This document shows positions 1,923-31,510 of a stretch of DNA of 34,712 nucleotides, piece after piece. The position numbers and the translations under genes are program-made. The stretch lies in the NCBI GenBank assembly GCA_011109175.1, contig RDEW01000153.1, forward strand, positions 1-34,712. The letters are read 5' to 3'. Within the stretch, counting starts at the first letter, position 1. Every line of letters begins with the position of its first letter. Under the pieces are notes generated by a model. The model had not been told where the DNA came from and did no database searches. It saw only the letters and a program-made list of their open reading frames with translations. Source of the DNA: Dicyema japonicum (Eukaryota; Animalia; Dicyemida).

Positions 1923-4900
1923 TTAAATTTTAATTCCCTGAACCCTCTGGGCATATGGCATCTCAGGGCTCTGCCTCCTATACTCCAGTGTCAGGATCTC
2001 TAGGGTCCGCTTTAATACAGTGGACTGTAGATAGGCCTGGAGCTTCCTATCTACCTCCAATTGCTTTAGATAACCCTTGTAGTATTTTGTTGTAATTCCT
2101 TCCCACGTCATTACTATAGGAATAACGAGGACCTTGCAACCAAGAATCTGCCCCATCTCGTTTGCAAGCAAGTCATACTTCTTTTTTTTCTCCACCTCCA
2201 CAGTCTGCAAACAGTCTTGAGACGTGATACCAACCTCTATGATAAAGACTTAATTAGACTCCTTATCGTGTACCACAATGTCCAGTTTATTGTGCTTCTC
2301 TAGAACCGAGGTACAGATAATACTATCAACCTTAATTTGGAGCCTGGTGTTTTTTACTACAAATTGCATCTTATGAGTCTGCAACTTTCTGGTGTGGCGA
2401 ATACCACACTTATTGCATAGTAGAAGATGAAGACTCCCTACTACCTCGTTATGCCTCCACACATAGTCGTGGCAGAGCATAGATCCACATCGAGTGGCTA
2501 AATGATCAACCGACATGATCCTTGACTTACAATTGGGACATGTATTTGTTGATCGACCCCAAAAAATATTGCGGTCTTGCATATACGTGTACAACGCCTC
2601 CGATCGAGGTGAGTTGTCACCGTATTTTAGCCATATTGTCGACGACTTAAGGTCGACATGTGGGTTGTCCAATGCTCTGAAGAGGACCTTATGAAGGCTT
2701 TTTAAGTTGATCTTTTCCATCAAATTATTATATTGTAATTCGATCAACGCCTTCACATTTACTAGCCCACCATCATCAACACCATACTTAGCAGACAAAA
2801 AAGGTCTGATAGTGCCTAGGTGGGTTGCCCGTGTTTTCTCGGTCGTTATTATGGCGTGCTTCCTAGCAGACACACTTGACCCAGCTATCAGGGTGTCGTG
2901 CATTCGCATTAGGATACGCTCACTTAGTTGGACTACTCCACACAGTCCACGGCCGAATTTATCACGGGGTAAATATAGTCTCTCCTTATTGGCTGCCACA
3001 CATGGACATGGTTCTCTCTGAGTACTCCACGGATCATAACATCCATCTCATCATACTCTTTGGGCTCAAACTCCACAACACCTATGTAGTAGTTTAGCAG
3101 CGAGACAGCATACTCATTTAATGCTAGGAACAAATTCCTTGCATTTAGAGACGTCTTACACAATAACGCTGCTCTTTTACGGATGCCTTCAGTAATTTGT
3201 CGCTTTGTCTCAGGCATTATAAGGGACTTTGGAGATTCGGTAACACCCAGATACTTATATCCTTCGTGTTCCTCTAGGACTCTTACTAACTCGCTACATA
3301 CTTGCGTGTTAGTCGCAGACTTTGAATAATTCAAATCTAGCCCTATACTCTCAAAGAATTCCCTGGCACAGACCCCCATGGAGTAGAGCTCCTCGGCTGT
3401 TCGAGCATACATCTTCAGTCATCGATAAAAAGAAGGTGATTTGTACTGAAACAGACCCCTTCACAATGAACTGGTATTTGCTCAAACCGGTCATTGAGGC
3501 GGCGACTCAATGGCTCCAAACAGAGAACAAAGAGTAGCGGAGACATGCTATCCCCTGAAGGATCCCCCTCTTGAGTTTTACCTCGCCTATCCGGTGCCTA
3601 TTATAGTTCAGATGAATACTCCACCTATTCATCACAGCCACTACAAAGCTGATGAACCACACAGGCATACACAGACTGTGTAGGCACTCGACAAGGTAAG
3701 AATGATCAACTGAATCGTAAGCCTTCTTCACATCCACCCACATAGACAAAAGTGAGTTTCCGTGAGACACAGAAAGGCATTTGTTGATCAAAGCCTGCTC
3801 TTTTGCCCCCTGACAATTTCGCACAGTTCCCAACTGATTCTCGGAGAGAATCCCATTTGCGTCTACAAAGCTCCTGACCTCATTAGCCACCAATTTGGTC
3901 ATCAGCTTATACAGGGTTGGCATGCAGGTTATCGGTCGATAATCTGCAGCAGACTGGGGGTTGTCCAGCTTTGGGATCAAATAAGTTGTCCCTGTGCATG
4001 CCCAATCAGGAATCGTTTCCGGGTTAGTGATGCTTTTCTGTAATACACGACACATAGACTCGTGTAATGAAGTGCATCTTTTGATAAAGAAATTATAAAC
4101 TTTATCGACCCCGGTCGTCTTCCAATCAGGGAGATGTCTCACTACCGCCTCAAATTTCTTGCGAAAATCGAAAATTCCGCAAGATTCCGCCAAGAAAGGA
4201 GCGGCGCTGTACGGGACATTCCACGCATTTCCTCTGCGTGGTTTAGCCTCCCACATACTACCCCATGTGGAAAGCATTTCCGCGTCCTGCTGGGAACATA
4301 CACTATGGCCATTTTCGTGTAGGCGACGGTAAAACAATCTGCGATTAAACTCAAACAGATTATTTTCTCTCCTTCTCTTACACCGACTTTCATGTGTATA
4401 GAGTTTCCTCTTATACACCATTATTGCCCCCTCTAACTCCACCTTTGCCCTCCTCAACTCTTTGAGGTCCCATTTGGGAACACGGAGTTTACTAATTAGC
4501 CCCTTTACTATAGCCGGTGCTTTTCCTCTAACCCCTCTCGCCACACTACTTATGTGCCCCTCCAGTGCTTCCAGCTCAGTCTGTCTCCAAGCAATCTTGG
4601 CACAGATCTGCTCCCTCCATTTACTGGGTGGTCTTGTCCGCTTGATCGCTGCATACAGCACTAGGGAGATGTCACCCAATGACCCTACTGGCTTAGCCTC
4701 CACCGCATAAGCCACAGCCTTATTGATACAGGTGAACACTACTCCGTTAACCTTACAATGAGGGATCTTGCTGGTAAATCTACGGTCCTCAAGTGGGACA
4801 TATGCCGCTGAAGCGAGATTCCACGCAAAGACCTCATAAACATGCTTGAGCTGCAACGTATCACAGCTCTGGTGCTCGTGCTTTTTTTGACAGTTGTGGT

Positions 4901-5132
4901 CACCTGGTCCCCGCCTTTTTAGACCAGTACCCTTTTTGTATACAGCCATTTTCTTGAGTTCACTCACAGATATAGCAGTACTGAATCTGTCACTGCAGAG
5001 CTCCACCAAGTATAGCCAACCATTCCAAGGCATTCGAGATAGCCTGCTACGTACCTGCAGGACTACCTGCCTCGCCCATACTTTTTGGTCAGCTGCCACA
5101 ATGCTCTCGGATATGGCAAGAATTACATTCAT
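1923..5132 (-). mobile_element. R4-like non-LTR retrotransposon (RT + CCHC + restriction-like endonuclease), inactivated
   Basis: Consecutive ORF pieces 3507-5132, 2933-3412, 2250-2999 and 1923-2210. RT motifs WKTTGVD, YRPITC, DVKKAYDSVDH, QG(D)SMSPLLF (1-nt deletion), FIDD. Knuckle CPNC...HLATRC and RHNEVV. RLE NKLDI...IEVG...EKKKKYD. Two frameshifts and an in-frame TAA at 2250-2252. Confidence 0.9.
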
Positions 5133-6309: not shown

Positions 6310-7165
6310 AAAATAATAAATTATTCCAATAAAAAAGCAAAAAATTTATAAACTTCAGAAACTATCAGACTCATTATTTTGTTTGACGTCGGTGACGAAC
6401 ATGCCATTGGCAACAAGTAAAGACTCGTCTCTATCATTAAATTCACTAATCGTGGGGTCGATATTTTTAGATTCGTTGTTCACCTCTTTGAGAGGTTTAT
6501 CCAATATAATAGATTCCTCTTCATAATTGTCNGTTGTCCGTGTCCTGACCCCCATAGTTCAAGGCTGAAATATTATATACTTGTTGCACATGTAAATTAG
6601 TTCGTTTGGCTAATATATGCAAGTAAACCTCATGACAGTTACTCTAATCTCCGTACATCATTCGGGTTAGGAAAACCAGAAAGGTGTACTCCCATGAAGG
6701 AGAACTAGTCTGCAACACCATCAGCTTTTCAAAAGCAACGAGAGAGTCTATATCTGTAGGTGTCAAAAATTCACTTTCAAATCTATCCTTTGCAAACTAT
6801 GTAATCATTTTTTATTGTACTAACATTATGAGTGAGAAATGATAGCTTGATTCTGCCATTGATGAGATCTACACTACGACAACAGACTATTTCAAGAATT
6901 TCGAATTGGAATGCCCCCGTAGTTGATAGGTATTAAATTACTCAATCAATAATTAATATACCCTTTATTAATCACCGAATAATGGAATTAATGTAACTTG
7001 TAAATATACTCTTTAATGATTGTTGGGGGATTACATGTTAGCACTGATGACTTTTCTAATCAAATGAAGGCGTTCAATGAGTATCTCAATATTTATTTTT
7101 ATCTAAAATATGCTAAATAGAACACTATTTGTCCTTCTAGCTCAAGAATTAGTTCTGGTAGGCCA

Positions 7166-8766: not shown

Positions 8767-10379
8767 TTGTATATTTATAACCCAGGGATCACTGAGAAAG
8801 AAAGATAGAAAAAACGTCACCAAGTGAAGGTAATTCCATTTCCCATAATCAGTGCGCCATCACGTTTGAAGTCTTCCACAGTCAAAAAAGGTTGACATGT
8901 TGCATTTAAAATTTAAAAAATATTTTCATTTTTATATAATTGATTAATTAAATAAATAACTAATTTTCAATAATTTTTCATTGTCATCTTAGAAGAGAAT
9001 AAGAAAAGATAGATCCGCAATAAGGAGTTAAATTTTCAGAGGGATATAAGATCTACGTCCAGTCGCCGATAAGGTCTCGATTAAAGTAATCATTAGGTCG
9101 GAAATAATAAAACAATTTTTAAAATATTTTAAAAGCAAAATAGTACAATTAGGACATTTTAAAAATCATGACAATTGAATTTTTTATTTTTCAAATTATT
9201 TTTTATTTTTCGCGTTTAACTGTATACAAAATATCACAAATACTTAATCTGCATTTTAAAATATCTAAAAAATAACCAACCTAAAAAATAACGCTCAAAT
9301 AACCAGCAGCGCTCACGAGGGTCTCCTGTATCTAACCAAAGGCTTGACGATACGTGAAATCAAGTCGTACTTAAAAAAAATTTTAGATGCGAAAAATGAA
9401 AAATTACTATTTAAAAATAATTGCTATTTTCTGGTTGTCCAAGTTAATAATATGAATAGGTGCAATTGCAAAATATGTTGACATCTGAATATATCTCTAA
9501 CTTTTTGGAAGATGTAAATTGCTGCCAGAAGAGTTTGTACACTGTTGATCAAGTAATTGGGATATTCATTGAACTCCAGAGGACTGGTATCACCTGGAAA
9601 GCATTTTCATTTGCTATGAAGGCATTACAAATCAGCTGCCCAAAGAAAGCGAACATTCTACAAAATTTATTTGAAATTCTACTTTTTTTTATTTATCCAA
9701 ATCTTATGAAATTCCTGTTGAAATGTGTCAATCTAAGAGTTGAAAGTCTTCACAAACACCCTCATATTGAACGAACGTTCGAGGATTAATCTCCATAATG
9801 GAAAAGGTTTCCTCTCTTTCTTGCTCTTCCACTATTTTTCGTTTTTTGGGTGTTCGTGGATGAAACCCACCACCAAGTTGTATCTCAAGTAATTTCCAAA
9901 GCGATTCCTAGACATCTGGAACAAACTGGCATCATCTCCGCACGCTATTTCCGTAACATCATCACTGTATGACTTCACACGATTCTACAAAACCGAAGGA
10001 TGGGAATATTAGAATTATTGATTTTGTATTATCATTAGCTCAACTCTTTTTCACATAAAGGATTGCAGTCTGTTTCGCTTACATCCCGCTAGTTCAGTGG
10101 GGGCTTAAGCTGTGCTGTTCTCTTCGCTCACAGCCATTTGATGTAATTTCGGCTTAATGTCTCATAGCTAGTTAAGTAACTTCGGCCTCACTAACTTGTA
10201 GGAGACCAGCGGCTATTAAACCCGGTCACTCCCATAGATCGGTCAGTTTTGACATTGTAGACAAACAGTGTACTAATTCAGGACATTCAAAAAGGTAATT
10301 TGTTGTTAACTCGGAGAGGTTACAAATGGAACAGAGGAATGCCTCATGATTAGTAAAATTATTAGCTGGACCATTTTAT

Positions 10380-13300
10380 TATTATTTATTTAAGCACTTC
10401 ACAAGAGCCATACTAATTATAGCCCCGCATGTGCAGCAAAAGAAACAAGGTTAGATGTCATCCTTTTCCATGCTCCCCTGTTCCTAGCCAAGGCTCTCAT
10501 GCTGTCCAGGTCGTCGGCATTTGTTAGGTTTTTTTTATACTGACCAGGTCTTTTTGTAAGACTATTGGCAGTGTTGTTCTTGGTCTTCCCGATAGCGGCC
10601 TTCTTCGCTAACATAGTATGTTTCCATAGATATGTTCGGTGGGGAAGTTAATTCCATCCTCAGCACGTGTCCGAAGAGCCTCCATCGGGATTCCAGTACT
10701 TCTAAGCTGATAGGTCTAGTGCTGCATCTCTTATATAAAGCATTCCTAGATATTCTCGTAGGCCAAGTAGTTCCTGTTATTTTTCTCAGCTGACCTCTGT
10801 GGAACGAGTCTAGTTTTTTCATATCCGCTGATGAGGTCGCCCAAGTTCCAGCGTTATATAAAAGTACGGGTTTTATGAATGAGTCGTATAGTAGGATTCT
10901 CATTTTTGTGTCGATGCCTTTTTGATTGAGCCATAAATTCTTCAGTTTATATAACGCAGCATTGGCTAGAGTTTTCCTACGTAAAATATCTTCGCTATCT
11001 CCCATAAGTGAACCGAGTTTCTTTACTTGTCGCCACTTCTCTTCTAGGACGTTACTCATCCTTCTTATCTCTGTGAGTTCTGTTTTTCTCTGTTCACAGT
11101 AAGAAACCATTTCCCTAGTACATCTGGTGCTTTTTCTAATAGGTTTTCCAGGACCTCTTTGTCTTCAGAAATTAGGTCTACATCGTCCGCGTAGATTACT
11201 TCTTCCGTCTTTCCTTGGTATGACGGTCTAAGTTCCCTCATAGCGGCTTCCAAATAAATTGTGAATAGTAGAGGAGAAAGAGAGTCTCCTTGTGGAGTGC
11301 CCGTATTTGTTTCAAATTTTCTTGAATAGGTTTTTCCGACTCTCACAAGGAGCTCAGTGTTAGAAAGTAGAATTCGGATCATCCTTAGACTCGATTCATC
11401 AAGAAATCCGCCCAGTACCCCCATTAATTTGTTCCTGTTAACCGTATCAAAAGCTCTTGATAGGTCAATTCCCAAAATATTGGTGGCGTTACGGTATCTT
11501 TGATATGTTGCACACCTCCATCTGTGACTCCAGACTGCATCAGCTGTGGATCTCCCTTCTCGAAAACCACTTTGACTATCTGGTAGGTATTTGTAAGCAG
11601 GTCCTTTTATTCGTTCAAGCACAATGTTTGCCAAGACTTTGCGTAATGAATTTAGTAGTATGATGGGTCGCAAATTTTCGAGCGGTCCTCTGTTTTTGTT
11701 AGTTTTTTGTATGGGGATTAGTAGTCCCGTACCCAGAGGTAGAGTTGAGTTAGTTGAAAACATTTCATTTAGTAGTGTAGCGATTTTTTCAAAAAGGAGG
11801 TCAGGGCCGTATTTCAGTAGTTCTGGGTTTATCGCATCTGGTCCGGGGCTTCTGTTATTCTTGAGTTTTCGGCAGGCCGTTTTGATTTCCTCGGCCGTGA
11901 TTGGTATCTTAAGGGGTCTTGGCCTTCCATCAAATGGGTGGATTGCTATGGTTTTGATGTTGAAAAGCTTCTCAAAGTGGCCGCGATGGCTTCAGTTTGT
12001 TCTTTGGTGTTCAGTATCAGCTTACCGTTCTCGTCTTTTATGGTTAGTCGACTTCGGTTCGTTCGCCGCAGCAAACGGGCAGCGACGTACACCTGTGCGT
12101 TGTCTTTCACTTTGTTTACTTCTTCTATACAGGAGGCTATTTCTTCTATGAAAAGCTTCTTGTTCAGACCCTTTATTTTTCTTCTGACACGTTGTCTTTC
12201 GCCTTGAAGGGCTTTTATCGCATTAGTGTCAGTGGCATTTGATTTTCTCATATTTATTTCTTTTAGACTTTTCGCAAGCTCGGGAACATCTGGATGAATA
12301 GCCTTCAGGTGCATTTTACTATTCTCCCTTTTGCCAAGACATGCTTCAGCAGCTTCGTTGATGGTGTCCTTTGTGCGTTTCCAGGCGTCTTCTAGCGTGG
12401 TATCCACCAATACGTCCTGCAAATTAGTCTGAATGTATTGTTGATATCTCTCAGTAATCTCCGGTTGAGAAATCAGCCTTTCAGTCGCGTAGTCGCCTCT
12501 GATTTTTCAAATTCGTGATTTTTTGCATTCCTGTATTTAGTGGCATGTTTTTTCAGGGTGAAGGTCGCAATAACCATCTTGTGGTCGCTGACAGTCGTCG
12601 AACCTTCATATGAACGTGCGTTTACTAGTAGGTGTTTGTCTTTAGCCCGGCATATGACATAATCGATTTGGTTGTATATTGGACCAGCTTTCCTTCTGAG
12701 TTCCTTCGCTTCCCCATCCACGTAGTTTTGTGGCAGGCAGGATGCGTAAATGCAGTATTGCATAGGAAAAGGTTGTTTGCCATACAAAAGTGACCAAGTA
12801 TTGTCCCGGGTAAATTTCTTATTCCACGTCCATGTTCTCCCAAGAAAACATCATCCGGGTTATTCTTCATCCCGACTTTTGCATTCAAATCACCAGCAAT
12901 GAGTATTAGTGATGACGACTCATATTCGTTGTACGTCCGTAACAGTGTTGAATAGAAGTCGTCTAGTTCTGTCGGATCTTTCGCTACTCTCCCGCAGTGT
13001 GGCGCATAAACATTTACAATTGTCAGAAAGCTCTTCGAAGGAGGTAAGTCGTTTAGCCGGATTTGTATAACACAGATCCTGTCATTCACACTCCATATAC
13101 GGTGGACTGCACTTGTCAGCTTTGAGTGGATGGCAAATCCAAGTCCATAATGTTTGAGTCGCTCGGCTGACATATAATTCGATATTCGCCAAAGTTTTCA
13201 TCAAGGCTACAAGTGACTTTCGTCTCTTGTAGACACCCAATAGAAACGTCGTATCTCTCCAGGTCATCACAGAGAATCTTCCTCGACCAGGTCGTAGATA

Positions 13301-19591: not shown

Positions 19592-19655
19592 AAACGTGGC
19601 TTTATTAAGGAAATTAACGATATTTTGAAAAACGTGGCTTTATTAAGGAAATTAA
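19592..19655. repeat. 26-bp direct repeat (38-bp period) immediately 5' of the Vingi-like LINE
   Basis: AAACGTGGCTTTATTAAGGAAATTAA at 19592-19617 and 19630-19655. Confidence 0.9.
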
Positions 19656-19798
19656 TGACGTTGTGGTTCACCAAGAGGTGTCATTTGGTTGTGCCTGTGC
19701 CCTACACACTACAAATGAAAAAGAACCACACCATTTCCCTATCGTCTCTCTTCAAGGAGATCTCGATGGCGACCATTGAGCGGGCACGAAGCTTTCGC

Positions 19799-19849
19799 TC
19801 ACAAGAATCCCTCCTGACATCCGGTGACATTGAACTAAACCCAGGGCCG
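19799..19849 (+). other. 2A-like StopGo (ribosome skipping) peptide SQESLLTSGDIELNPGP
   Basis: GAC ATT GAA CTA AAC CCA GGG CCG at 19826-19849 = D-I-E-L-N-P-G-P. It matches the D(V/I)ExNPGP consensus and lies in frame directly before the APE domain. Confidence 0.9.
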
Positions 19850-21386
19850 CAGAATAGACCCATCAGAATCTTACAACTTAACATCAATGGAATCACCTCG
19901 AAACATACCGAATTGGCTGAGTACTTGGTTAAACACCGTATTGACATTGCCCTTCTACAGGAGTCACGTTTTCTGCCTTCTACCCAAACACCAAAATTCA
20001 AAAACTACTCTTTGCTCCGTACTGAGCGATCAAATGGATCTCACGGTGGTGGCCTAGTCACCCTCATTCACAACTCCATCCCATTCACGGATACCACTGA
20101 CCACACATTGACAGCGGCTTCTGATAAACATATGGAATTGCTATCCATCAGCATCAATATTATATCAACTCCTTACACAATTCTGAATATCTACATTCCC
20201 CCTTCGTCTTGCTGCCAGAAGAACTACCGACCAAACCTAGAATTCCTTCAACTATACGAAAACATAGTTATTTGCGGCGATCTAAACGCAAAAGATCCAC
20301 TATGGTTCCGAAACCAGAATTCGGACCACAGAGGGAAACAAGTGATCTCTGAACTGGAACACCTAGTGATATTAAATAACCCCCGCCAACACACAAGATG
20401 TGGAACACGCTCTGGGGATCCTAACACGTCTCCTGACCTTTCCATATGCTCAGCTCCCCTTGCAAAATCGATCTACTGGGATGTCAGATATGACTTACCC
20501 TCAGATCATAACCCTATTCTGATCGACATCTAATTGCATTTTGGACGAACTATGTCGAGGCGAACCTATGTGAACTACAAAAGGGCGAGATGGATCGACT
20601 TCACGGTTGACGTCGAAACGTCGCTGGAAAACTTCTCTGTGAAAGATTTTACCTCTCCAGACAAAGCCATTGCACATTTCAACTCAGCCATCCTTTCGGC
20701 GGATAGAAAGCACGTCCCTAAAGGATTCATCCATGATTACAAACTATTTTTCAACAAAGAAATATTGGATCTCATCTGTGAGAGAAGACACCTAAAACGT
20801 TCCCGAACAACCAACCAGCAACTCCAAGATGAAATTTCTTCCCTAAACAAGAAGATAACCCACCTCATTACGGAGCTCAAAAAGGAGAAGTGGTCCACTT
20901 TCGTCTCTCGATTGAATCCAAAATCAAAACCCCAAAGTTTCTGGAGATTTATCAGAGAAATACAATCAAACCGAATCGAGCACAACTCATGGAGGTAGAC
21001 TTGGAAAGGACAACCAAACGAAAGATTTCCACTGCCAGGCAAATGACTTGATGACTCACTATTGCAAAATGAGTCATATTCCAATGAATAAAGAAAATCG
21101 ACCTCATATTACTAAACCCCCAAGGGTAACAAAGGCACGATTTGAAGTATCAATAAGTCATGTTCAAAAACTCATTACAAACTCAAGAAACTCACCAGCC
21201 ACGGGACCCGATCGGATCAGCATATTCCACCTAAAGCACCTCGGTCCAAACGGTCTATTGGCACTTAAAGATATCTACGAATTCTCCATCAACAAGTGTT
21301 TCATCCCGATGTTATGGAAGAAGTTGAACATTATCCCGATACTCAAGAACAACAAAGCCTCCTCCTTGCCCTCTTCGTTCAGGACA

Positions 21387-21594
21387 ATTTCCTTAACATC
21401 TGTTGTCTCAAAAATCCTCGAAAGGATCATTCTTAACGAAATCACTCCCCACCTCGACCTCTCCGACTCACAACATGGTTTCCGTCCTTTATTTCCTTAA
21501 CATCTGTTGTCTCAAAAATCCTCGAAAGGATCATTCTTAACGAAATCACTCCCTACCTCGACCTCTCCGACTCACAACATGGTTTCCGTCCTTT
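21387..21594. repeat. 104-bp tandem duplication inside the RT
   Basis: Units 21387-21490 and 21491-21594 are identical except CCCCACC vs CCCTACC. The duplication causes a frameshift. Confidence 0.92.
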
Positions 21595-23261
21595 ACACTC
21601 GACCACCACGCACTTACTGACACTAACCCAATACATCTCCAACGGTTTCAACAACTGCAAACCCCCAGAACGAACTGTCTTGGCCTCTATTGACCTAACT
21701 AAAGCTTTCGACAGAATCTCCCGTGTGGTCCTCTACAACAAGATCTATTCTACAAATATTCCTTCTGTATGGAAGTCATGGCTCACAAATTTCCTCTCGG
21801 GAAGACTGGGCCATACGTGTCTATATTCAAATCTATCAAGATATCGACTCCTACCAAACGGTGTTCCCCAGTGATCAGTCCTTTCACCCTCACTTTTCAA
21901 CCTTTACGTCAAAGATATCCCAACAACCCAAAATACGTTACTATTGACATATGCCGATGATCTAGTAATCGCATCCAGGAGTGGCGATGTTCGACTGGCC
22001 ACCGAAAAAGTGCAGTACCACCTGAACTTGCTATCCGACTGGATGAACTTAAACTGGATGAGTGTTTCCACCTCGAAGTCATCAGCTACCCTGTTCACAA
22101 CCGATCGAAGACAATTCAACCTAAACCCCACACTCTCGTTGGGAGACGAACCACTCCCCTTAAATAAATACCCGAAGATCCTTGGAGTTGTCTTCGATCC
22201 TTCACTCTGTTTCAACAGACAAGTGGAGGAAGTAATGACAAAAGCCAAGCGGAAACTTAACATATTACGGGCAGTAGCTGGCTACTCAAACGGTCAGCAA
22301 AAAGAAAACTTAACTCTTCTCTACAAACAGTTCATCAGGACTACACTCAACTATGCCTCACCAAGTTGGGCCCCCTCAATCTCCTTGTCCCTTTCTCAAG
22401 AACTGCAGAAAGTGCAAAACTCGGCGCTGAGAATAATAACTGGCTGCTTAAAGTCAACCCCCACCGACCATTTACATTGGGAGTCGAAAATCCTCCCGCT
22501 CTATGACCACCTGAAAATGCGTAATTTACAATTCCTACGGCAGTCGTTCGACCCGAATCACCCAGTTCACGCTCTGCTAAGTAACAATAACCGCAGATAC
22601 ATACCAGGACCCTCTTTGACCTACAAAGAGCCTTGTCGAAGATCACCCCCCCTCAAGAAGACTCAACTTGGACCCGCCGAATCCATGATTTCATCTCGAC
22701 ACGGGCCATTAGGACAATTCAATATAACAAAGTCTTGGAGCGCTTCCCCCCTGATATCAGTCCAACGGAACAATCGCTCCCGAAGAAGATCAGAATCGGA
22801 CTGGCTCGCCTACGATGTGGACACCACACTTTCCTGGCTGGCAGAGTAGTTCGGGACCTTTTTCCCTGCCCTGGACCACCGGATGCAAAAGTCTAGGATC
22901 TCTGGGAGCGGCCTGTCCGGACTGCACGCTCTCTGATGGTCGCCGGCTTCCCACTTGCTGGCGAAGCCGGGGTTAATAATTTAATTTAATTAAAATGGAG
23001 ATGTTTGGCACGTGCTTAGAATGAACATAAACGCCTCTGCATAACAATTACATTAACAATGAGAACAAACCATCGTCAGAGGAGGGCCTAAAGTCACTAT
23101 TCCTTTGGCTCTAAACAAGGATCTTAATTGAATTGGAATAAAACTTAAATGTGTGGCATACCTAGAAGATCTACGAACCGATGCACACAGAAGAGACTGA
23201 GGTAGACGCCTAGTGAAAAAAATTTCGAAACGTGTAGCATAAATGGTTCCTTGTTTATTTA

Positions 23262-23463
23262 CTTAACTACCCAAGACCACTGTAAAACCAAACTAATTAT
23301 CTCGTGATCCCGATTCATTCTAAAAGCGACCTCATTTTTTCTTCACTCGTTCCCGCACATAACAGCAAAAGACTGAATTTTCAGGGACACATTCCCGTCA
23401 TCTGGAGTCTAGTCTCATAAGGTCCTCCAGAGGCGTTGGTCCGGTTAGGTGATCTTCACAAAT
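23262..23463 (-). mobile_element. ~200-bp 5'-truncated copy of the LINE 3' end at 18892-19090
   Basis: High nucleotide similarity by eye, from TTAACTACCCAAGACCAC to CTTCACAAATC. Confidence 0.9.
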
Positions 23464-24130
23464 CAAAAGTACAGGCTGGAATGGACGAGCTAGATGGAGA
23501 CTATGGACTCATTTTACTACCAACGTCATCAAGACACTATGGACAGGTATTTGACGTGAACAAGAAACTTGTTAGTGGGATACGTCGGTGTTGGAGTGTG
23601 AACGACAGAATCAGCATACTCAAAACGAGTTGGGGTCAAACGCACGTCGAGGAGCCTTATATCTCAATTATAAATGTTTATGCACCCCACAGTGGACGGG
23701 TCGCCAAAGATTCGGACGAACTTGACGCTTTCTACGTGCAGCTGTGGAGGACATATGGCAAACTGGAACCGTCTTTCTAGTTTTCATTGCCGGAGACTAG
23801 AAAGGTAATGAAGGAGTACGTCAGGAACATGAAGCGACTATCGGAAGACACGGAAGATGGATCAGGAACCTGCCGGGGGCTGTGCTGATAAATTTCTGCA
23901 GGGGATTTAATCTATTCCTGTGTAACAATGTGTTTGCAAATGCTGCACGATATAAGACTACCTGGTCGAGCTGCAGAATAAATGAATCTGGGGGCCATGT
24001 GATGATTTACAATCAGATTGATTACATTCTTTGCCGACAGAAAGATAGAACACTATTACAGGACTTGAGGTCATACGGAGGTGCCGTCGTAGAAAGCGAC
24101 CACAAGATCGTCGTGGACCTGTTTGACATT
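23464..24130 (+). mobile_element. RTE-family APE endonuclease fragment
   Basis: WSVNDRISIL, NVYAPHSGRVAKDSDELDAFY, YNQIDYILCR, SDHKIV; homologous to 12.5-13.2 kb. Contains stops and frameshifts. Confidence 0.88.
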
Positions 24131-24300
24131 ACAAGTCGCTTTATACGCACTTCATGTACAAAGCCATCTCAGTTCATACGGAGAGAATACCTAGTCGAGA
24201 GATTATGTTTTTCACAGTTCACTCGAAAAATCTATCNTCATAATTTTCTTTTAAAAATCTATGAATTTTAATTCTTGAAAATAAAAAAAATTAACAATAA

Positions 24301-25495
24301 TTAAGAGAAAACACCACTACCAGTCCAATTATCAACAGCACTTATATTTTGAACCTCTGTGATATGATAACAATTTTCAAGACACGCATTACGGTCGCCA
24401 ACGGCGACAACCCCGATAATCCAAGGTCTGTATCCTTCAGTTATGAGCATATCATTGCAAAAAAGATTAGCATTTTCTCCTGATATTACAATTAAAAGAC
24501 CTCCTATCAATAAATATTGCTAAAACCATTAACTTCGGAGATGGAACCAGGCTGAACATTATTAAACCAATCCATAGCTTTGCCAATTTTAGCCGTATTT
24601 GCAATCATAGGAAAACTATAAAAATGAAAATTGACGGCATTTTTTTGAATCAAAGCTAAATCTTGAGCGTGACCAATAAGACCCCTTTCAGAGATAGTAA
24701 CTGCTGCTTTGGCAGAATATTTTTTCATGAGAGTGGCAGCTAAAAAGTCATTTAATTACTTTTAAACCAGATTTATTTAGTCTTGTCATTGATTGAATAG
24801 CAACGTTATACGCGTTTGTTACTTCACTCGTAGTGGTGAATTTAAGCAATGAGACAGAATTCTTAGGATCATTTAAACATTGAAAAGCTTTAACTGCAAT
24901 CTCAGTTCCCAAAGGTTTTGTTAAAATCAACACATCTCCAGTATCTGAATTATATGGACTAAAAAATTTTATTTAAAATTACTAAATAATCTCATTTTCG
25001 GAACAAATAGAAGTAGCTGATCCACCCAATGTAACCCATGGATTCAAAACTGTTTGTCCCCCATTAACCTCAGCTCCAGCAACTCTTGCTTGATCTTTAA
25101 ATCCTTTAAAAATGCTCTTAGAAACAACGTCTTTATCTTTTTCAGACAAATTAGTGCTTAGTCCGAAGAACATGAGAATATTTTGACACTCTGTTATTCC
25201 ATATGAGTATATATCGCTTAAAACACATGAACATGCAATTCTCCCCATGATGTAAGGATCATCAACCATTGGATAAACTATTTCAGTAGTTTGAATCATA
25301 ATAATTGCTCCATTTCTTAAGCTAGTAAGAGTACAACCCCCTATATTTGATAAACTAAATTTTACCATGCACTGTAGAAGGACCAGTATTTTTTGTCTTA
25401 AGATTTTCCCTTATTTTTCTAATAATGGCTAGGTAAGAAGGAGTAATATGATCTTTATGAGATGCAAGGGCTGTCAATTTAAAATCAAGTGACAT
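24301..25495 (-). CDS. SEPHS: Selenophosphate synthetase (SelD/SPS/SEPHS) homologue, 364 aa, catalytic residues degenerate
   Basis: Exons 25495-25366, 25340-24983, 24958-24768, 24739-24527, 24503-24301 (1095 nt, all phases consistent, no internal stop). GT-AG introns of 25, 24, 28 and 23 nt. Motifs YPMVDDPYIMGRIAC, LSDIY, GGQTVLNPW, GDVLILTKPLGT, GHAQ, GGLL. Confidence 0.93.
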
Positions 25496-25689
25496 GAAAT
25501 CAGATTCCAAATTTTGAGATAGAAAAAACAACCAAAGTATTGGATTTTAATTAAATTAAAAAAAACAAATTATTATAATAAATATATAAAATTATTAAAA
25601 TAATTTAATTAAATTGGAACGGGAGTCTCTGATCTTTCTGCCTCTTTTTTTGCCACTTGCAAAAATTCTTTTAAAGAGTCATGCTCAGC

Positions 25690-26270
25690 GACATCACCCA
25701 TTTATCAATTTATCAATATCAAAACTTTCGACCACAGCATTCCACTACTACTCACTTTACTAAATTGACTGACTTTATCGCCGACGGATTCAATAACCAT
25801 AAACCACCTCTCCGAACTGTTCTTGCATCTATCGAAATAAGCAAAGTTTTTAATAGAACTTCAAGACATCTCCAAGAGAATTATTAGAGATATTCCTTAG
25901 TTCCTTTTCTACGATTAATTTTTCAGAGATATTTCTTAGTTTTTTTCTACTATTAGTTATCATAACTGTTTTTAATAAATTATGTGTCCTGCGTGTATGG
26001 AGGTATAAGAATTATTGCTCTCGCGAAAAGAGTTGTGTTTTTTGCAGAATTGGCTAACGTCTTTCATGTCTGGTAGAATGAGCAGGACTCTTGTTACCAA
26101 ATGGAGTTATACGAAACTCTGTCTTCTCTCCCGCATTATTTAACCTTCATTTATATTACTGGGAGACAAGAAACTCTTACTCTCTCACGCAAAAGATCAA
26201 ATAATTGGTCAAGACGAAACAACATTCCAGAAGCCTCGACGATGCTACATGACGTCTTGATATTTTAACA
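25690..26270 (+). mobile_element. Decayed Vingi-like RT fragments
   Basis: QNFRPQHSTTTHFTKLTDFIADGFNNHKPPLRTVLASIEISKVF, and NGV...SVFSPALFNL at ~26100. Confidence 0.75.
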
Positions 26271-27272
26271 TCATGGCCGTGCGGTCTTTGGTTGGTTGGA
26301 GCGAGTCTGGGCGGCTCCAATTAGACAGGAAATCTAGCAGCCTCAAGTCCACAAGCAATAACTCAGTTGATTGCGGCGTGTCTTGGACTTCTTCCAGCAC
26401 TCCTTCGGCAGGAAAAAGCGTGAAAACCTTTCGCGCCTACCATTCTTCCACATCTAGAGCGATGGATCGTGAAAACATCTATTCCGAGGTGAACGGAAAC
26501 CCTAATTCTCGTCGCGTCGTCATCCAATAGTGTCACAAGTGAGATGCATGGTAATGCTCTGAGCCAGACACCACTTTCGATGAGATGCAGAAGCTTGACG
26601 ATGCTGATCAAGCACAGGTTTTATCTTATCTATAATCTTTGAGCATAGAAGCTTGTCCTATTCTCGTTGTTTATTAGCGTTCTTCGGAATCCCAGACTCA
26701 GTCATGTCCAGACGTCCCGAGCCATGGATGCCACAGGTTCAGCGTCCGATCTGTTAATGTAGCGTAGGATCTGGCGCGTGAGACCACTAAAAGCATATGT
26801 CGAAGATAGAAAGGCAGGGAGGGCGAGTTCTAGTGGTAGCGTATTCCGATTCCTCAATAGCGAACGGGTAGTTTGCATTGGATCCAGCCAGTTTTATCAA
26901 AAGAAATGTTGAGTATTTCTTCAACGGCAGTTTTCAGTTTCTCGTCAATGGCTCTTAAGAAGTTCATATCAGTAAAACACGGGGCTGTCCGTAGAAGAAA
27001 AAGGAGTGGCGTAAGGTTAATATTCCTTAGCAATAATAAAGACGTGTGGGAGTCCAGGGTTTTTAAATCTAATGTGAAACATTGAAAGGATGCATTTTTT
27101 TCTTTCTGGAGAATTGACACATTACTTTCGTATAGAGGAGAGCCAAGAAAAATTGCGTTTTCGAATCGGGTGACCGAGACATCCCGGAGATAAGTAAAAT
27201 TTGCCACTGCACAATCAAATTCGACCTCTCAGCAAACAACATTTATGATTTCACATCTATGCGGATTCGGTT
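26270..27272 (-). mobile_element. CRE-like retrotransposon, post-RT region to CCHC knuckle, cut by the gap
   Basis: FLGSPL...SLLLLRN..LLFLLRTAPC...W.QCKLPVRY*GIGIR; SGVWLRALP...LLDD..RI.V..HLG...RCG.MVGAKGFHAFSC..SAGR.PRHAAIN. Confidence 0.85.
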
Positions 27273-28209
27273 NNNNNNNNNNNNNNNNNNNNNNNNNNNN
27301 NNNNNNNNNNNNNNNNNNNNNNNNNNNNNNNNNNNNNNNNNNNNNNNNNNNNNNNNNNNNNNNNNNNNNNNNNNNNNNNNNNNNNNNNNNNNNNNNNNNN
27401 NNNNNNNNNNNNNNNNNNNNNNNNNNNNNNNNNNNNNNNNNNNNNNNNNNNNNNNNNNNNNNNNNNNNNNNNNNNNNNNNNNNNNNNNNNNNNNNNNNNN
27501 NNNNNNNNNNNNNNNNNNNNNNNNNNNNNNNNNNNNNNNNNNNNNNNNNNNNNNNNNNNNNNNNNNNNNNNNNNNNNNNNNNNNNNNNNNNNNNNNNNNN
27601 NNNNNNNNNNNNNNNNNNNNNNNNNNNNNNNNNNNNNNNNNNNNNNNNNNNNNNNNNNNNNNNNNNNNNNNNNNNNNNNNNNNNNNNNNNNNNNNNNNNN
27701 NNNNNNNNNNNNNNNNNNNNNNNNNNNNNNNNNNNNNNNNNNNNNNNNNNNNNNNNNNNNNNNNNNNNNNNNNNNNNNNNNNNNNNNNNNNNNNNNNNNN
27801 NNNNNNNNNNNNNNNNNNNNNNNNNNNNNNNNNNNNNNNNNNNNNNNNNNNNNNNNNNNNNNNNNNNNNNNNNNNNNNNNNNNNNNNNNNNNNNNNNNNN
27901 NNNNNNNNNNNNNNNNNNNNNNNNNNNNNNNNNNNNNNNNNNNNNNNNNNNNNNNNNNNNNNNNNNNNNNNNNNNNNNNNNNNNNNNNNNNNNNNNNNNN
28001 NNNNNNNNNNNNNNNNNNNNNNNNNNNNNNNNNNNNNNNNNNNNNNNNNNNNNNNNNNNNNNNNNNNNNNNNNNNNNNNNNNNNNNNNNNNNNNNNNNNN
28101 NNNNNNNNNNNNNNNNNNNNNNNNNNNNNNNNNNNNNNNNNNNNNNNNNNNNNNNNNNNNNNNNNNNNNNNNNNNNNNNNNNNNNNNNNNNNNNNNNNNN
28201 NNNNNNNNN
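27273..28209. other. Assembly gap (937 N)
   Basis: Run of N. ORF calls spanning it are artefacts. Confidence 1.
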
Positions 28210-28339
28210 AAACTTCAACTTGGAACGATGTTCATCCCTCGAGCACATAAAAGCACGTAACTGGATCTTCGTAGTCGCAACGACACGTTCCTCTGTTTTA
28301 CGTATTAAGTATTCCATAGGCATTGGAGACTAAACATTC

Positions 28340-29830
28340 GAAAAGTCCATCGTATGATATCTTCGCTATTTCCTAGTAGTGAGCCAAATTTCTTTATGTG
28401 TCTCCATTTTTCTTCGAGTGAGTTGTTCATTCTTCTTATCTCTGTTCGTTCTGTTTTTTCCCTGTTCACGGTGAGAAACCATTTCTCAAGTATATCTGGT
28501 GCTCTTTCTAGTACATGCTCCAGGAGTTCTTTGTCTTCAGAAATTATGGTCGACATCATCAGCATAAATCACTTCTTCTATTTTTCCTTGATATAATTGT
28601 CTCAGTTCCCTCATAGCGGCCTCCAAGTATATTGTGAATAGTAGGGGAGAGAGGGAGTCTCCTTGAGGAGTGCCTGTGTTTGTTTCAAATTTTCTTGAGT
28701 AGGTTTTTCCAACTCTCACAAAAAGCTCTGTGTTAGATAGAAGGATTTGAATCATTCGTAGACTCGATTCGTCAATAAACCCTTCCAGCACTGTCATCAA
28801 TTTTTTCCTGTTAACCGAGTCAAAGGCTTTTGATAGATTTATTCCCAGAATGTGAATGGCATTGCAATATCTTTGATGTGTTGCACATTTCCATCTGTGA
28901 CTCCAGACTACATCAGCTGTTGATCTTCCTTCTCTGAACCCACTTTGACTTTCGGGTAGGTATTCATAAGGGGGTCTTTTTGTTCGTTCCAGTACAATGT
29001 TAGCTAAGACTTTCCGTAGAGAATTTGATAATATAATAGGTCGTAAGTTTTCAACCGATCCTTTGGGTTTATTGGGTTTTTGTATAGGTATTAGTAATCC
29101 CGTTCCCAGGNTTCCAATACAATGTTAGCTAAGACTTTCCGTAGAGAATTTGATAATATAATAGGTCGTAAGTTTTCAACCGATCCTTTGGGTTTATTGG
29201 GTTTTTGTATAGGTATTAGTAATCCCGTTCCCAGGGGCAAGGTTGAGTTAGTTGAAAACATTTCATTTAGTAGTGTAGCGATTTTTTTCAAAAAGGGGGT
29301 CAGGCCCGTATTTCAGTAATTCTGGGTTTATCGTATCTGGTCCAGGGCTTCTGTTATTTTTTAGTTTTTGACATGCTGTTTTTACTTCCAAAATTGAAAT
29401 TGGTTCTTTTAAAGGTATAGGCTTTCCTTTGAATGGGGGGATTGCTGTAGCCACATTAAAAAGTTTCTCAAAACTGTTGTAATTACCTCCGCTTGTTCTT
29501 CAGTATTCAGTAATGTCTTGCCATTTTTGTCTTTGATGATTATTTGTTCCTTCCGGTTTGTGTGGCGTAGTAAACGAGCGGCCATATACATTTCTGAATT
29601 ATCCTTTAGTTTGGATACTTCATTGATTTTACGAAGAAGTTCTTCTTGGTGAAATGTCTGGTTCAGTCTCCTGATTTTTCTACGGATTTGGCCCTCTGCC
29701 CCTGAAGGACTTTCCTCTTGTTATAGTCTTTTTCGATTAGTTTTTTTTGTATGGATTTCCTTTAACTCCTTTTCTAATTCCTTTACAAGTTCAGTATGTG
29801 TCGTCAAATCTTGACTGGCCATCTCCCGCG
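28340..29830 (-). mobile_element. Second RTE-family copy (RT region), diverged from the 10.4-kb copy and frameshifted
   Basis: KLKNNRSPGPD.INPELLKYG, RPIILSNSLRKVLANIVLE, GTPQGDSLSPLLFTIYLEAAMREL, YADD. A 124-bp duplication flanks the N at 29111. Confidence 0.92.
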
Positions 29831-30594: not shown

Positions 30595-31510
30595 CTAAGA
30601 GTAACAATGATCAGATAATTTCACGTTTGCTAGAAGCGTGTAAAGTGGAAAATAATTGCATTGATAGAGGCTCAGTCTTATTTTATTATCCAAAAGTCCG
30701 ATTCCTTCGGGAGTGTACATTGAGAATAGTACTTGTTCGTCAGTCGCCATCAGTTTCAGAGATAACAATTTAAAAAAAAACCTTTCGTAATTATCACAAA
30801 ATTTGTACATTAGGTCAACATGACCTATAAATATAGCTCCAGATACCCAAACTCTTGCATTTTTTATGACACTTTAGATAGGATATTCTCTATATTTTTT
30901 ACTTGACTCATAGTGACACGTGCATCGTACACGTATTTTGTTTTTTCAGTTTATACATTTTTGTAGTTTTCACGTTACGGAAAAGACCGACATCAACCCA
31001 GGCGACGTATGAGAAGTTATGGGAGAACATTACAATTGCTCGTCTCAAAATATCGTGTTTGGAATACATGACGGCGGAGTAATTATAATTTCCAGTTTCT
31101 TCAGGATGCACGCCAAATCCAGGAAGTGTGAAAATTTGCTTTATTTCTTCAATTTTTTTAAACCCAATCAATTCTGACCTGTTTAAGTTAATTAAAGTGG
31201 TAGGAAGGTTTTTTCTAATCTTACCCATGTATCTGAGGATTTTCTTGTCGTCTGAGAAAAATACAAGATGGTTTTCATTGAAGGCAAATTTTCTCATAAA
31301 CATAAAATACTCTTGAGGTTTACGAAACCCACCTGGTTTCATAAAACCTCCTATATTATAGTATCCACTGACTAATAAGATATCTTGTTGGAAGCTCTGT
31401 CATTTGTCTAAATATTATGAACTCTTTACATAGATTTTCCACAACAATATACAAATAACGATCAAACAAAGCAAAAAAATGATATTTTTTCTGATATGTC
31501 TAATACCCAT
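30595..31510 (-). pseudogene. HtrL/YibB (WlaTC-like) family type II membrane glycosyltransferase-like gene, frameshifted
   Basis: N-terminal TM anchor MGIRHIRKNIIFLLCLIVICILLWKIY, then a 33-nt intron (31397-31429), then LLVSGYYNIG...EYFMFM...LVFFSD...HPE..NYNYSAVMYSK...WVDVG.FR...RV..SQV...VWVSGAIFIG...ATDEQVLFSMY. Two apparent frameshifts near A-runs (~30890-30945) and one TAA. Confidence 0.65.

Follow-up and report, generated by a model that had tools for sequence, protein, structure and literature searches.

Animal selenophosphate synthetases (SPSs) of the SPS1 type have been described with a variety of residues in place of the catalytic one. These paralogues include SEPHS1-Thr of human and mouse, SPS1/ptuf-Arg of Drosophila, SPS1-Gly of tunicates, SPS1-Leu of clitellates and SPS1-UGA of Hymenoptera (Mariotti et al. 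2015, PMC4561486). Genes of this type have originated more than once, cannot sustain the synthesis of selenoproteins and are retained in insects devoid of selenoproteins (PMC4561486). Although it does not produce selenophosphate, SPS1/SEPHS1 is required for life in both mouse and fly, and it is absent from the screens that recovered other factors of selenoprotein synthesis (PMC12936836; PMC4561486). The phosphate/metal ligands listed for SPS structures include D69, D87, D110 and D265 (D64, D97, D120 and D279 in the Leishmania major enzyme; PMC7595633), and nucleotide complexes of human SEPHS1 are known (cited in PMC7595633). The survey of Mariotti et al. (PMC4561486) makes no mention of decay of the Lys, Asp or Asn ligands in SPS1. 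In the full-text literature we found no description of a selenophosphate synthetase as a pseudoenzyme, and nothing relevant on selenoproteins in Myxozoa.

We examined a stretch of 34,712 nucleotides from the dicyemid Dicyema japonicum (contig RDEW01000153.1), referred to here as the window. An SPS homolog is present on the minus strand at positions 25495-24301. We rebuilt the gene model independently, and obtained five exons and four introns (Table 1) with a coding sequence of 1,095 nt, corresponding to 364 codons and a TAA stop. There were no internal stops, the four introns were all of the GT..AG type, and 8 of the 8 splice dinucleotides were intact. The initial annotation, which had proposed a clean 364-codon gene of five exons with neither stop nor frameshift, was borne out by this model. 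Past the TAA, the minus strand at 24226-24303 runs for 25 codons free of TGA (with in-frame TAA and TAG) before a TGA is met. A ciliate-type code would read through this run, which we judged to be a matter of chance in AT-rich sequence.

The identity of the gene was clear from comparisons of the individual exons with human SEPHS1 (phmmer against PDB). Exon 2 matched residues 73-186 (E 1.5e-41), exon 3 residues 188-249 (E 1.4e-8), exon 4 residues 253-309 (E 5.5e-7) and exon 5 residues 323-377 (E 8e-3), with an identity of approximately 41% overall and 56% in exon 2. The proposed splice junctions thus restore an alignment with SEPHS1 that is colinear and nearly without gaps. On exon 2, the AIRS N-domain (PF00586) scored 37.4 bits, above its cut-off of 24; Pfam did not pick up AIRS_C when the short exon pieces were scanned one by one. 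The NCBIfam selD model (TIGR00476) matched exons 2, 3 and 4 in order with 87.2, 25.5 and 12.9 bits. Its cut-off of 125 bits was reached by no single exon piece, and the rough sum of the pieces was about 125.6. Exons 2-5 are thus colinear with the SelD/SPS body, with the N-domain followed by the C-domain as expected. A tblastn search of the window with three canonical SPS proteins gave no second SPS-like segment. Most animals do not normally have introns as short as 23-28 nt. Introns shorter than 30 nt have been documented in Dicyema japonicum itself and in myxobolid myxozoans (PMC13644364).

Table 1. Exons, introns and motifs of the SPS homolog, and retrotransposons of the window.
Feature	Position	Strand	Remarks
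Exon 1	25366..25495	-	ATG at 25495-25493; 43 codons + 1 nt; diverged N-terminus
Loop position HKDHITP (exon 1)	25459-25439	-	Replaces Gly-rich Sec/Cys-Lys loop; residual DFKLT..K....P likeness (MAFFT)
Intron 1	25341..25365	-	25 nt, GT..AG; excision joins CAT G|GG GGT, frame restored
Exon 2	24983..25340	-	AIRS N-domain core; HGG (GMD equivalent) spans intron 1
QTTE (exon 2)	25293-25282	-	
SCVLSD (exon 2)	25230-25213	-	
NGGQT (exon 2)	25065-25051	-	
Intron 2	24959..24982	-	24 nt, GT..AG
Exon 3	24768..24958	-	Conserved LTKPLG at 24924-24907
Intron 3	24740..24767	-	28 nt, GT..AG
Exon 4	24527..24739	-	C-domain start; VTISERG at 24701-24681 for TDITGFG; D265 equivalent is T
Intron 4	24504..24526	-	23 nt, GT..AG
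Exon 5	24301..24503	-	TAA stop 24303-24301; EVNGG (ETSGG equivalent) at 24536-24499 spans intron 4
Non-LTR retrotransposon	3507-5132	-	
Non-LTR retrotransposons	10562-13173; 19625-22849; 23436-23780; 28305-29591		

The rest of the window consists mostly of decayed non-LTR retrotransposons with RVT_1 and endonuclease domains. One long LINE ORF is intact, and its best relatives are 'uncharacterized proteins' of Octopus sinensis (62-63% identity; scaffold VCDQ01005567.1), followed by sequences from microsporidia and dust mites. Dicyemids inhabit the kidneys of octopuses. Like the very short introns, the likeness fits a dicyemid source, and it is compatible with transposon sharing between host and parasite or with parasite DNA in the octopus assembly. 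An HtrL_YibB-like gene is located on the minus strand at 30595-31510, where the piece 30908-31375 matched PF09612 with 27.3 bits (cut-off 24.1). It has an apparent N-terminal membrane-anchor exon joined via a GT..AG intron of 22-33 nt, and a second short intron, of about 61 nt, seems to precede position 30873. The HtrL_YibB family is mainly bacterial. We also found a fragment of a dynein heavy chain on the plus strand at 9460-9671 (PF08393, DHC_N2, E 1.6e-4), a protein with more than 4,000 residues, about 70 of which are visible here. The match passes from 'ELQRT' to 'WYHLESIFICYEGITNQLPKE' by moving into the next frame, and the switch therefore implies that 1 nt is missing near 9584/9585, through a frameshift or a fault in the assembly.

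[quoted passage not shown] Residues 1-45 contain no Cys and neither a G-x-G nor any other Gly-rich loop; the first Cys does not occur before residue 46. The coding sequence has no in-frame TGA. A scan against Rfam gave neither a SECIS element nor any other family at gathering score in the window, no SECIS was found at E<=10 in 23000-26200, and no tRNA-Sec was found within the 34.7 kb. These results agree with the initial annotation, in which an in-frame TGA and an obvious SECIS had been reported absent. It had further placed HKDHITP at the site of the KGxGCK loop. By MAFFT and by eye, DFKLTALASHKDHITP aligns with DFRLTxxTELKGTGCKVP, the window protein being two residues shorter, and the position of the catalytic Lys (K20 in Escherichia coli, K32 in human) is then taken by I or T. 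On the other hand, an HMM built from the N-termini of canonical SPS proteins gave exon 1 a score of 2.1 bits (E=1), hmmalign left residues 1-45 unaligned, and a search of PDB with exon 1 gave no SPS match. The absence of Sec, Cys and a Gly-rich loop therefore stands, whereas the residue-level equation of HKDHITP with KGxGCK, made by eye and with MAFFT, is statistically unsupported, and which residue is exactly homologous is uncertain. The conclusion that the site is dead does not depend on this alignment, since residues 1-45 contain neither Cys nor a Gly-rich loop.

We also looked for a different 5' exon that would supply a GxGCK loop, a possibility raised along with the original claim. Among the ORF pieces of 25341-27272 on both strands, examined with the HMM of canonical N-termini, none outscored exon 1 and no alternative 5' exon was found, nor did tblastn over the whole window reveal one. 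Translation from an ATG inside intron 1 (25368) would yield a product without the loop, so that with either start, 25495 or 25368, the catalytic Sec/Cys and Lys are missing. The assembly is a draft, with a 937-N scaffold gap at 27273-28209, about 1.8 kb upstream of the SPS homolog, and single Ns at 6532, 13827, 18891, 24237, 29111, 31854 and 32843; a more distant 5' exon beyond the 27273-28209 gap is conceivable.

To examine the remainder of the active site, we aligned the spliced product with canonical SPS proteins, 42 sequences of 300 residues or more taken from a HMMER search of 1.84 billion representatives. Residues were numbered as in human SEPHS1, which was fixed by the PDB matches of exons 2 and 4. 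Fifty columns were conserved in at least 90% of the 42 proteins, and the window protein retains 38 of these. Among the 12 changed columns, ten lie in the nucleotide/metal motifs (D69G, D87E, N106C, T264V, D265T, T267S, G268E, F269R, T320V and S321N), the other two being (F/I)89V and Q206E. Changes were enriched in the motif blocks (10/18 against 2/32 elsewhere, Fisher p=2e-4) as well as among the five ligands defined in the literature (4/5 against 8/45, Fisher p=0.009). These five positions, D69, D87, N106, D110 and D265, which we take to be D51, D68, N87, D91 and D227 of E. coli SelD, read G, E, C, D and T, and D110 alone is unchanged. Scaffold columns were kept, among them G100, G115, G147, F148, W169, G173/G174, T200-K201-P202 and G204, and so were M244, N248, G270, G273, H274, E319 and G322/G323. 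D110, the carboxylate of D87E, T85/T86 (T61/T62 of the product), GGQ, LTKPLG and H274 survive; in product numbering, the equivalents of D87 and H274 are E63 and H250.

The alignment with SPS proteins had been suggested as a check of the initial annotation, and its outcome, a scaffold kept in 38 of 50 columns with the losses concentrated in the ligand motifs, agreed with what had been read from the sequence. The readings HGG for GMD, TTE for TTD, SCVLSD for ANVLSD, VTISERG for TDITGFG and EVNGG for ETSGG were each correct on the rebuilt model. The statement that only the D91 equivalent is intact, with D68 changed to E, likewise matches the column table, in which D110 is kept and D87 is E.

Decay of this kind was not confined to the window. 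Approximately 20 of the best 150 representatives deviate from the TTD or NxxxD motifs, although in two or three the row is truncated or misaligned and the replacement is not a true one. The decayed SPS-like proteins include a 'selenide, water dikinase-like' protein of the sawfly Cephus cinctus (XP_024936427), proteins of the wasp Odynerus spinipes (KAK2579299-301), the mites Varroa destructor/jacobsoni (XP_022663503) and Tropilaelaps (OQR67876) and the acanthocephalan Neoechinorhynchus agilis (KAL7669484), a Drosophila obscura protein that carries the NCBI name 'inactive selenide, water dikinase-like protein' (XP_022212863), and proteins from Tara Oceans metatranscriptomes (P0015/P0170). Scaffold columns are kept in these proteins, and the losses are subsets of D87, N106, D110, the T264-F269 block and T320. 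The pattern is that of the window protein, at an identity of only 27-40%. Among them all, the window protein alone has a non-acidic residue at D69 and no basic residue at the K32 position of the loop, and it is among the few that retain D110. The Cys at the N106 ligand (Cys82 of the product, codon 25225-25227) recurs in the P0015 marine group and in the Cephus protein (P0080); in the other decayed lineages this position is Ser, Ala or Val. In the marine group, five transcript contigs (L001 and L009-L012, Tara Oceans) gave a dN/dS of about 0.036 at a dS of about 0.10. Expression and strong constraint are thus evident for at least one lineage of decayed SPS. The marine proteins are 459-463 residues long with an acidic N-terminal extension, and probably derive from planktonic arthropods.

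As judged from these sequences, ligand decay in SPS-like proteins is recurrent across animal groups. The suggestion that the window gene may represent an undescribed SPS class was thus an overstatement, as public records already hold SPS-like proteins with overlapping losses. The accompanying claim that animal SPS1 paralogues keep the Lys and Asp residues applies to vertebrate SEPHS1, but not to the proteins of Cephus, Odynerus, Varroa, Neoechinorhynchus, D. obscura and the marine group, which have lost overlapping sets. In a quick tree built on all columns, the window protein and the decayed SPS-like proteins formed one group with an SH-aLRT support of 97. In a more careful tree with the N-terminus and the motif columns masked, this grouping was gone; the window protein lay outside a well-supported bilaterian clade, on a branch without resolution, and the decayed state must have arisen two or more times on this tree. 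A single clade of the window protein and the decayed SPS-like proteins was not rejected by the AU test (p=0.23). Long branches are involved in these groupings. The proteins may belong to one old paralogue family, and convergence together with long-branch attraction is the simpler reading of the grouping.

At the level of sequence, the chemistry of the SPS homolog is lost while the gene is intact. The loss of the loop and the ligands makes selenophosphate synthesis by the protein very unlikely. We lean towards the view that the gene is maintained by selection and that its product acts without ATP-dependent chemistry, as a binding, dimeric scaffold that continues the role of SPS1. The protein would then be a PurM-like two-domain pseudoenzyme with the residues of the fold kept, among them those of the N-domain core through which canonical SPS dimerizes. 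Of the five ligands, D69, N106 and D265 are lost outright, as is the mobile Gly-rich Sec/Cys-Lys loop; the change of D87 to E is conservative, and canonical ATP binding or hydrolysis is most likely gone. Such a protein would act by binding, as a dimeric scaffold or a partner, in continuation of an 'SPS1 function' that is independent of selenoproteins. Given D110, D87E, T85/T86, GGQ and H274, the homolog may still bind some ligand or metal. The role as a scaffold or partner is a reasonable guess, and a default rather than a demonstrated mechanism, because the function of SPS1 is itself undefined (PMC12936836).

The surviving residues raise the possibility that the pocket was rebuilt rather than abandoned, for instance with Cys replacing N106, E replacing D87 and E-R replacing G268-F269, and that it serves a different small molecule in a remodelled enzyme or ligand-binding protein. 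In favour of this, D110, E63, T61/T62, GGQ, LTKPLG and H250 are kept, N106 has become Cys in three separate lineages (the window protein, the P0015 marine group and Cephus P0080), and a dN/dS as low as that of the marine lineage is seen more often where a protein has an exactly defined molecular task. The replacements at the other ligands, however, vary by lineage (D87 to E, A, K or N; D110 to N, G, H, R or S; D265 to A, E, W, H or T), which resembles release from constraint and not convergence on a new site. To our knowledge, no chemistry in the PurM superfamily (PurM, ThiL, HypE, SelD) proceeds without the Asp-metal cluster, and this counts against a rebuilt enzyme. We regard a rebuilt pocket as unlikely.

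Another explanation is that the lineage has lost selenoprotein synthesis and that its SPS gene is a young relic, drifting but not yet marked by a lesion. The surroundings are those of a decaying region, rich in LINEs and with a frameshifted dynein fragment, and the window protein has a long terminal branch, of 1.24 where the median is 0.88. In contrast to the SPS homolog, the neighbouring LINEs are broken into many short ORFs and the dynein fragment carries its apparent 1-nt deletion. We estimated how long an unconstrained gene would remain intact. Of all possible point changes in the coding sequence, 4.3% create a stop; with modest indel assumptions and with the 16 splice-site bases counted, the chance of an intact gene was about 5% once neutral divergence had reached 2%, and less than 0.1% once it had reached 5%. 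Several of the active-site replacements (N to C, D to T, F to R) require at least two nucleotide changes, in addition to the shortening of the loop, and the site has therefore decayed while the frame was kept. Furthermore, the substitutions are strongly non-uniform, the other conserved columns being almost unchanged, while drift would have struck the conserved Gly, Pro and Trp columns equally, and every splice dinucleotide has survived. Since a frame is unlikely to stay intact beyond a few percent of neutral divergence, selection is probably still acting on the gene. A relic is, in our estimation, somewhat less likely than a rebuilt pocket.

No close relative of the gene was found in the collections searched, where nothing exceeded 56% identity. 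The best match of the HMMER search against 1.84 billion representatives was at 56%, with vertebrate SEPHS1 at 54-56% in exon 2. A word-index search of 5.8 billion clusters gave three matches, all at 54% or less, and a scan of JGI metagenomes four loci at 52-53%. An exact look-up of the exon-2 ORF returned no record, no protein at or near 100% identity was present among the representatives of about 15 billion proteins, and these collections yielded no copy derived from a transcript.

We consider it highly improbable that the gene is an artefact, be it of an erroneous gene model, of a scaffold that is chimeric or of contamination by foreign DNA, for example from a ciliate with another code: the 23-28 nt introns are also typical of Paramecium-type ciliates, the homolog sits in an island of 31-35% GC between LINEs of 43-48% GC and an in-frame TGA follows 25 codons past the TAA, but the exons lack the in-frame TAA or TAG that ciliate reassignment would predict, the protein falls among animal sequences (nearest to vertebrate SEPHS1 in the quick tree, and among opisthokonts without finer resolution once the active-site columns are masked), the HtrL_YibB-like gene also seems to use very short introns, such introns are documented in Dicyema japonicum and myxobolids (PMC13644364), and the LINEs have relatives in octopus records. 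A ciliate origin with a reassigned code was rejected on the absence of in-frame TAA/TAG, the proximity to SEPHS1 and the known introns of Dicyema.

Returning to the reading of a constrained, non-catalytic scaffold, a broader proposal can be put forward, which on the sequences at hand we consider possible but doubtful: animals may repeatedly evolve SPS pseudoenzymes that are expressed and strongly constrained, consisting of a dimeric PurM-like scaffold with neither the loop nor the Asp/Asn site. Examples would come from a dicyemid, Hymenoptera, parasitiform mites, an acanthocephalan and arthropod-like marine plankton. If this is true, the 'SPS1 function' would need neither selenophosphate synthesis nor ATP chemistry and would be a binding or scaffolding role, and the window gene would be its most stripped-down natural example, having also lost the loop Lys and D69. 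Intact SPS homologs without ligands would represent ready-made separation-of-function mutants; if decayed homologs rescue the loss of SPS1, the function of SPS1 is non-catalytic. For annotation, decayed SPS genes should not be taken as proof that an organism is capable of making selenoproteins. The dicyemid homolog also hints that one more parasitic lineage of animals may have lost the selenocysteine trait.

Among known systems, the window protein is homologous to the active SelD/SPS2 enzymes across the whole AIRS/AIRS_C body, and differs from them in lacking the Sec/Cys-Lys loop, the UGA/SECIS pair and most of the metal ligands. In terms of sequence, none of the features of an active SPS, Sec or Cys in the loop, the catalytic Lys, the set of metal/nucleotide ligands and a SECIS, was found. 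The AIRS N-domain is common to the PurM superfamily (PurM, PurL, ThiL, HypE and SelD), and weak matches to ThiL were obtained; the protein is specifically SelD/SPS-like and not a member of another branch. The resemblance is closest to SPS1. The window protein is a metazoan SPS homolog that lacks Sec as well as Cys at the catalytic position, has no SECIS, is not expected to synthesize selenophosphate, has the same two-domain architecture and finds its best matches in vertebrate SEPHS1. Neither Sec nor Cys occurs in its N-terminal 45 residues, and vertebrate SEPHS1 sequences were nearest in both trees. The characterized SPS1 proteins, however, keep K32, D69, D87, N106, D110 and D265, as seen in the vertebrate sequences of the alignment, and bind nucleotide, whereas the window protein has lost the loop, K32, D69, N106 and D265, and has E at D87. 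Judged by its sequence, the window gene would fit the SPS1 definition of Mariotti et al., as a member decayed beyond those characterized so far.
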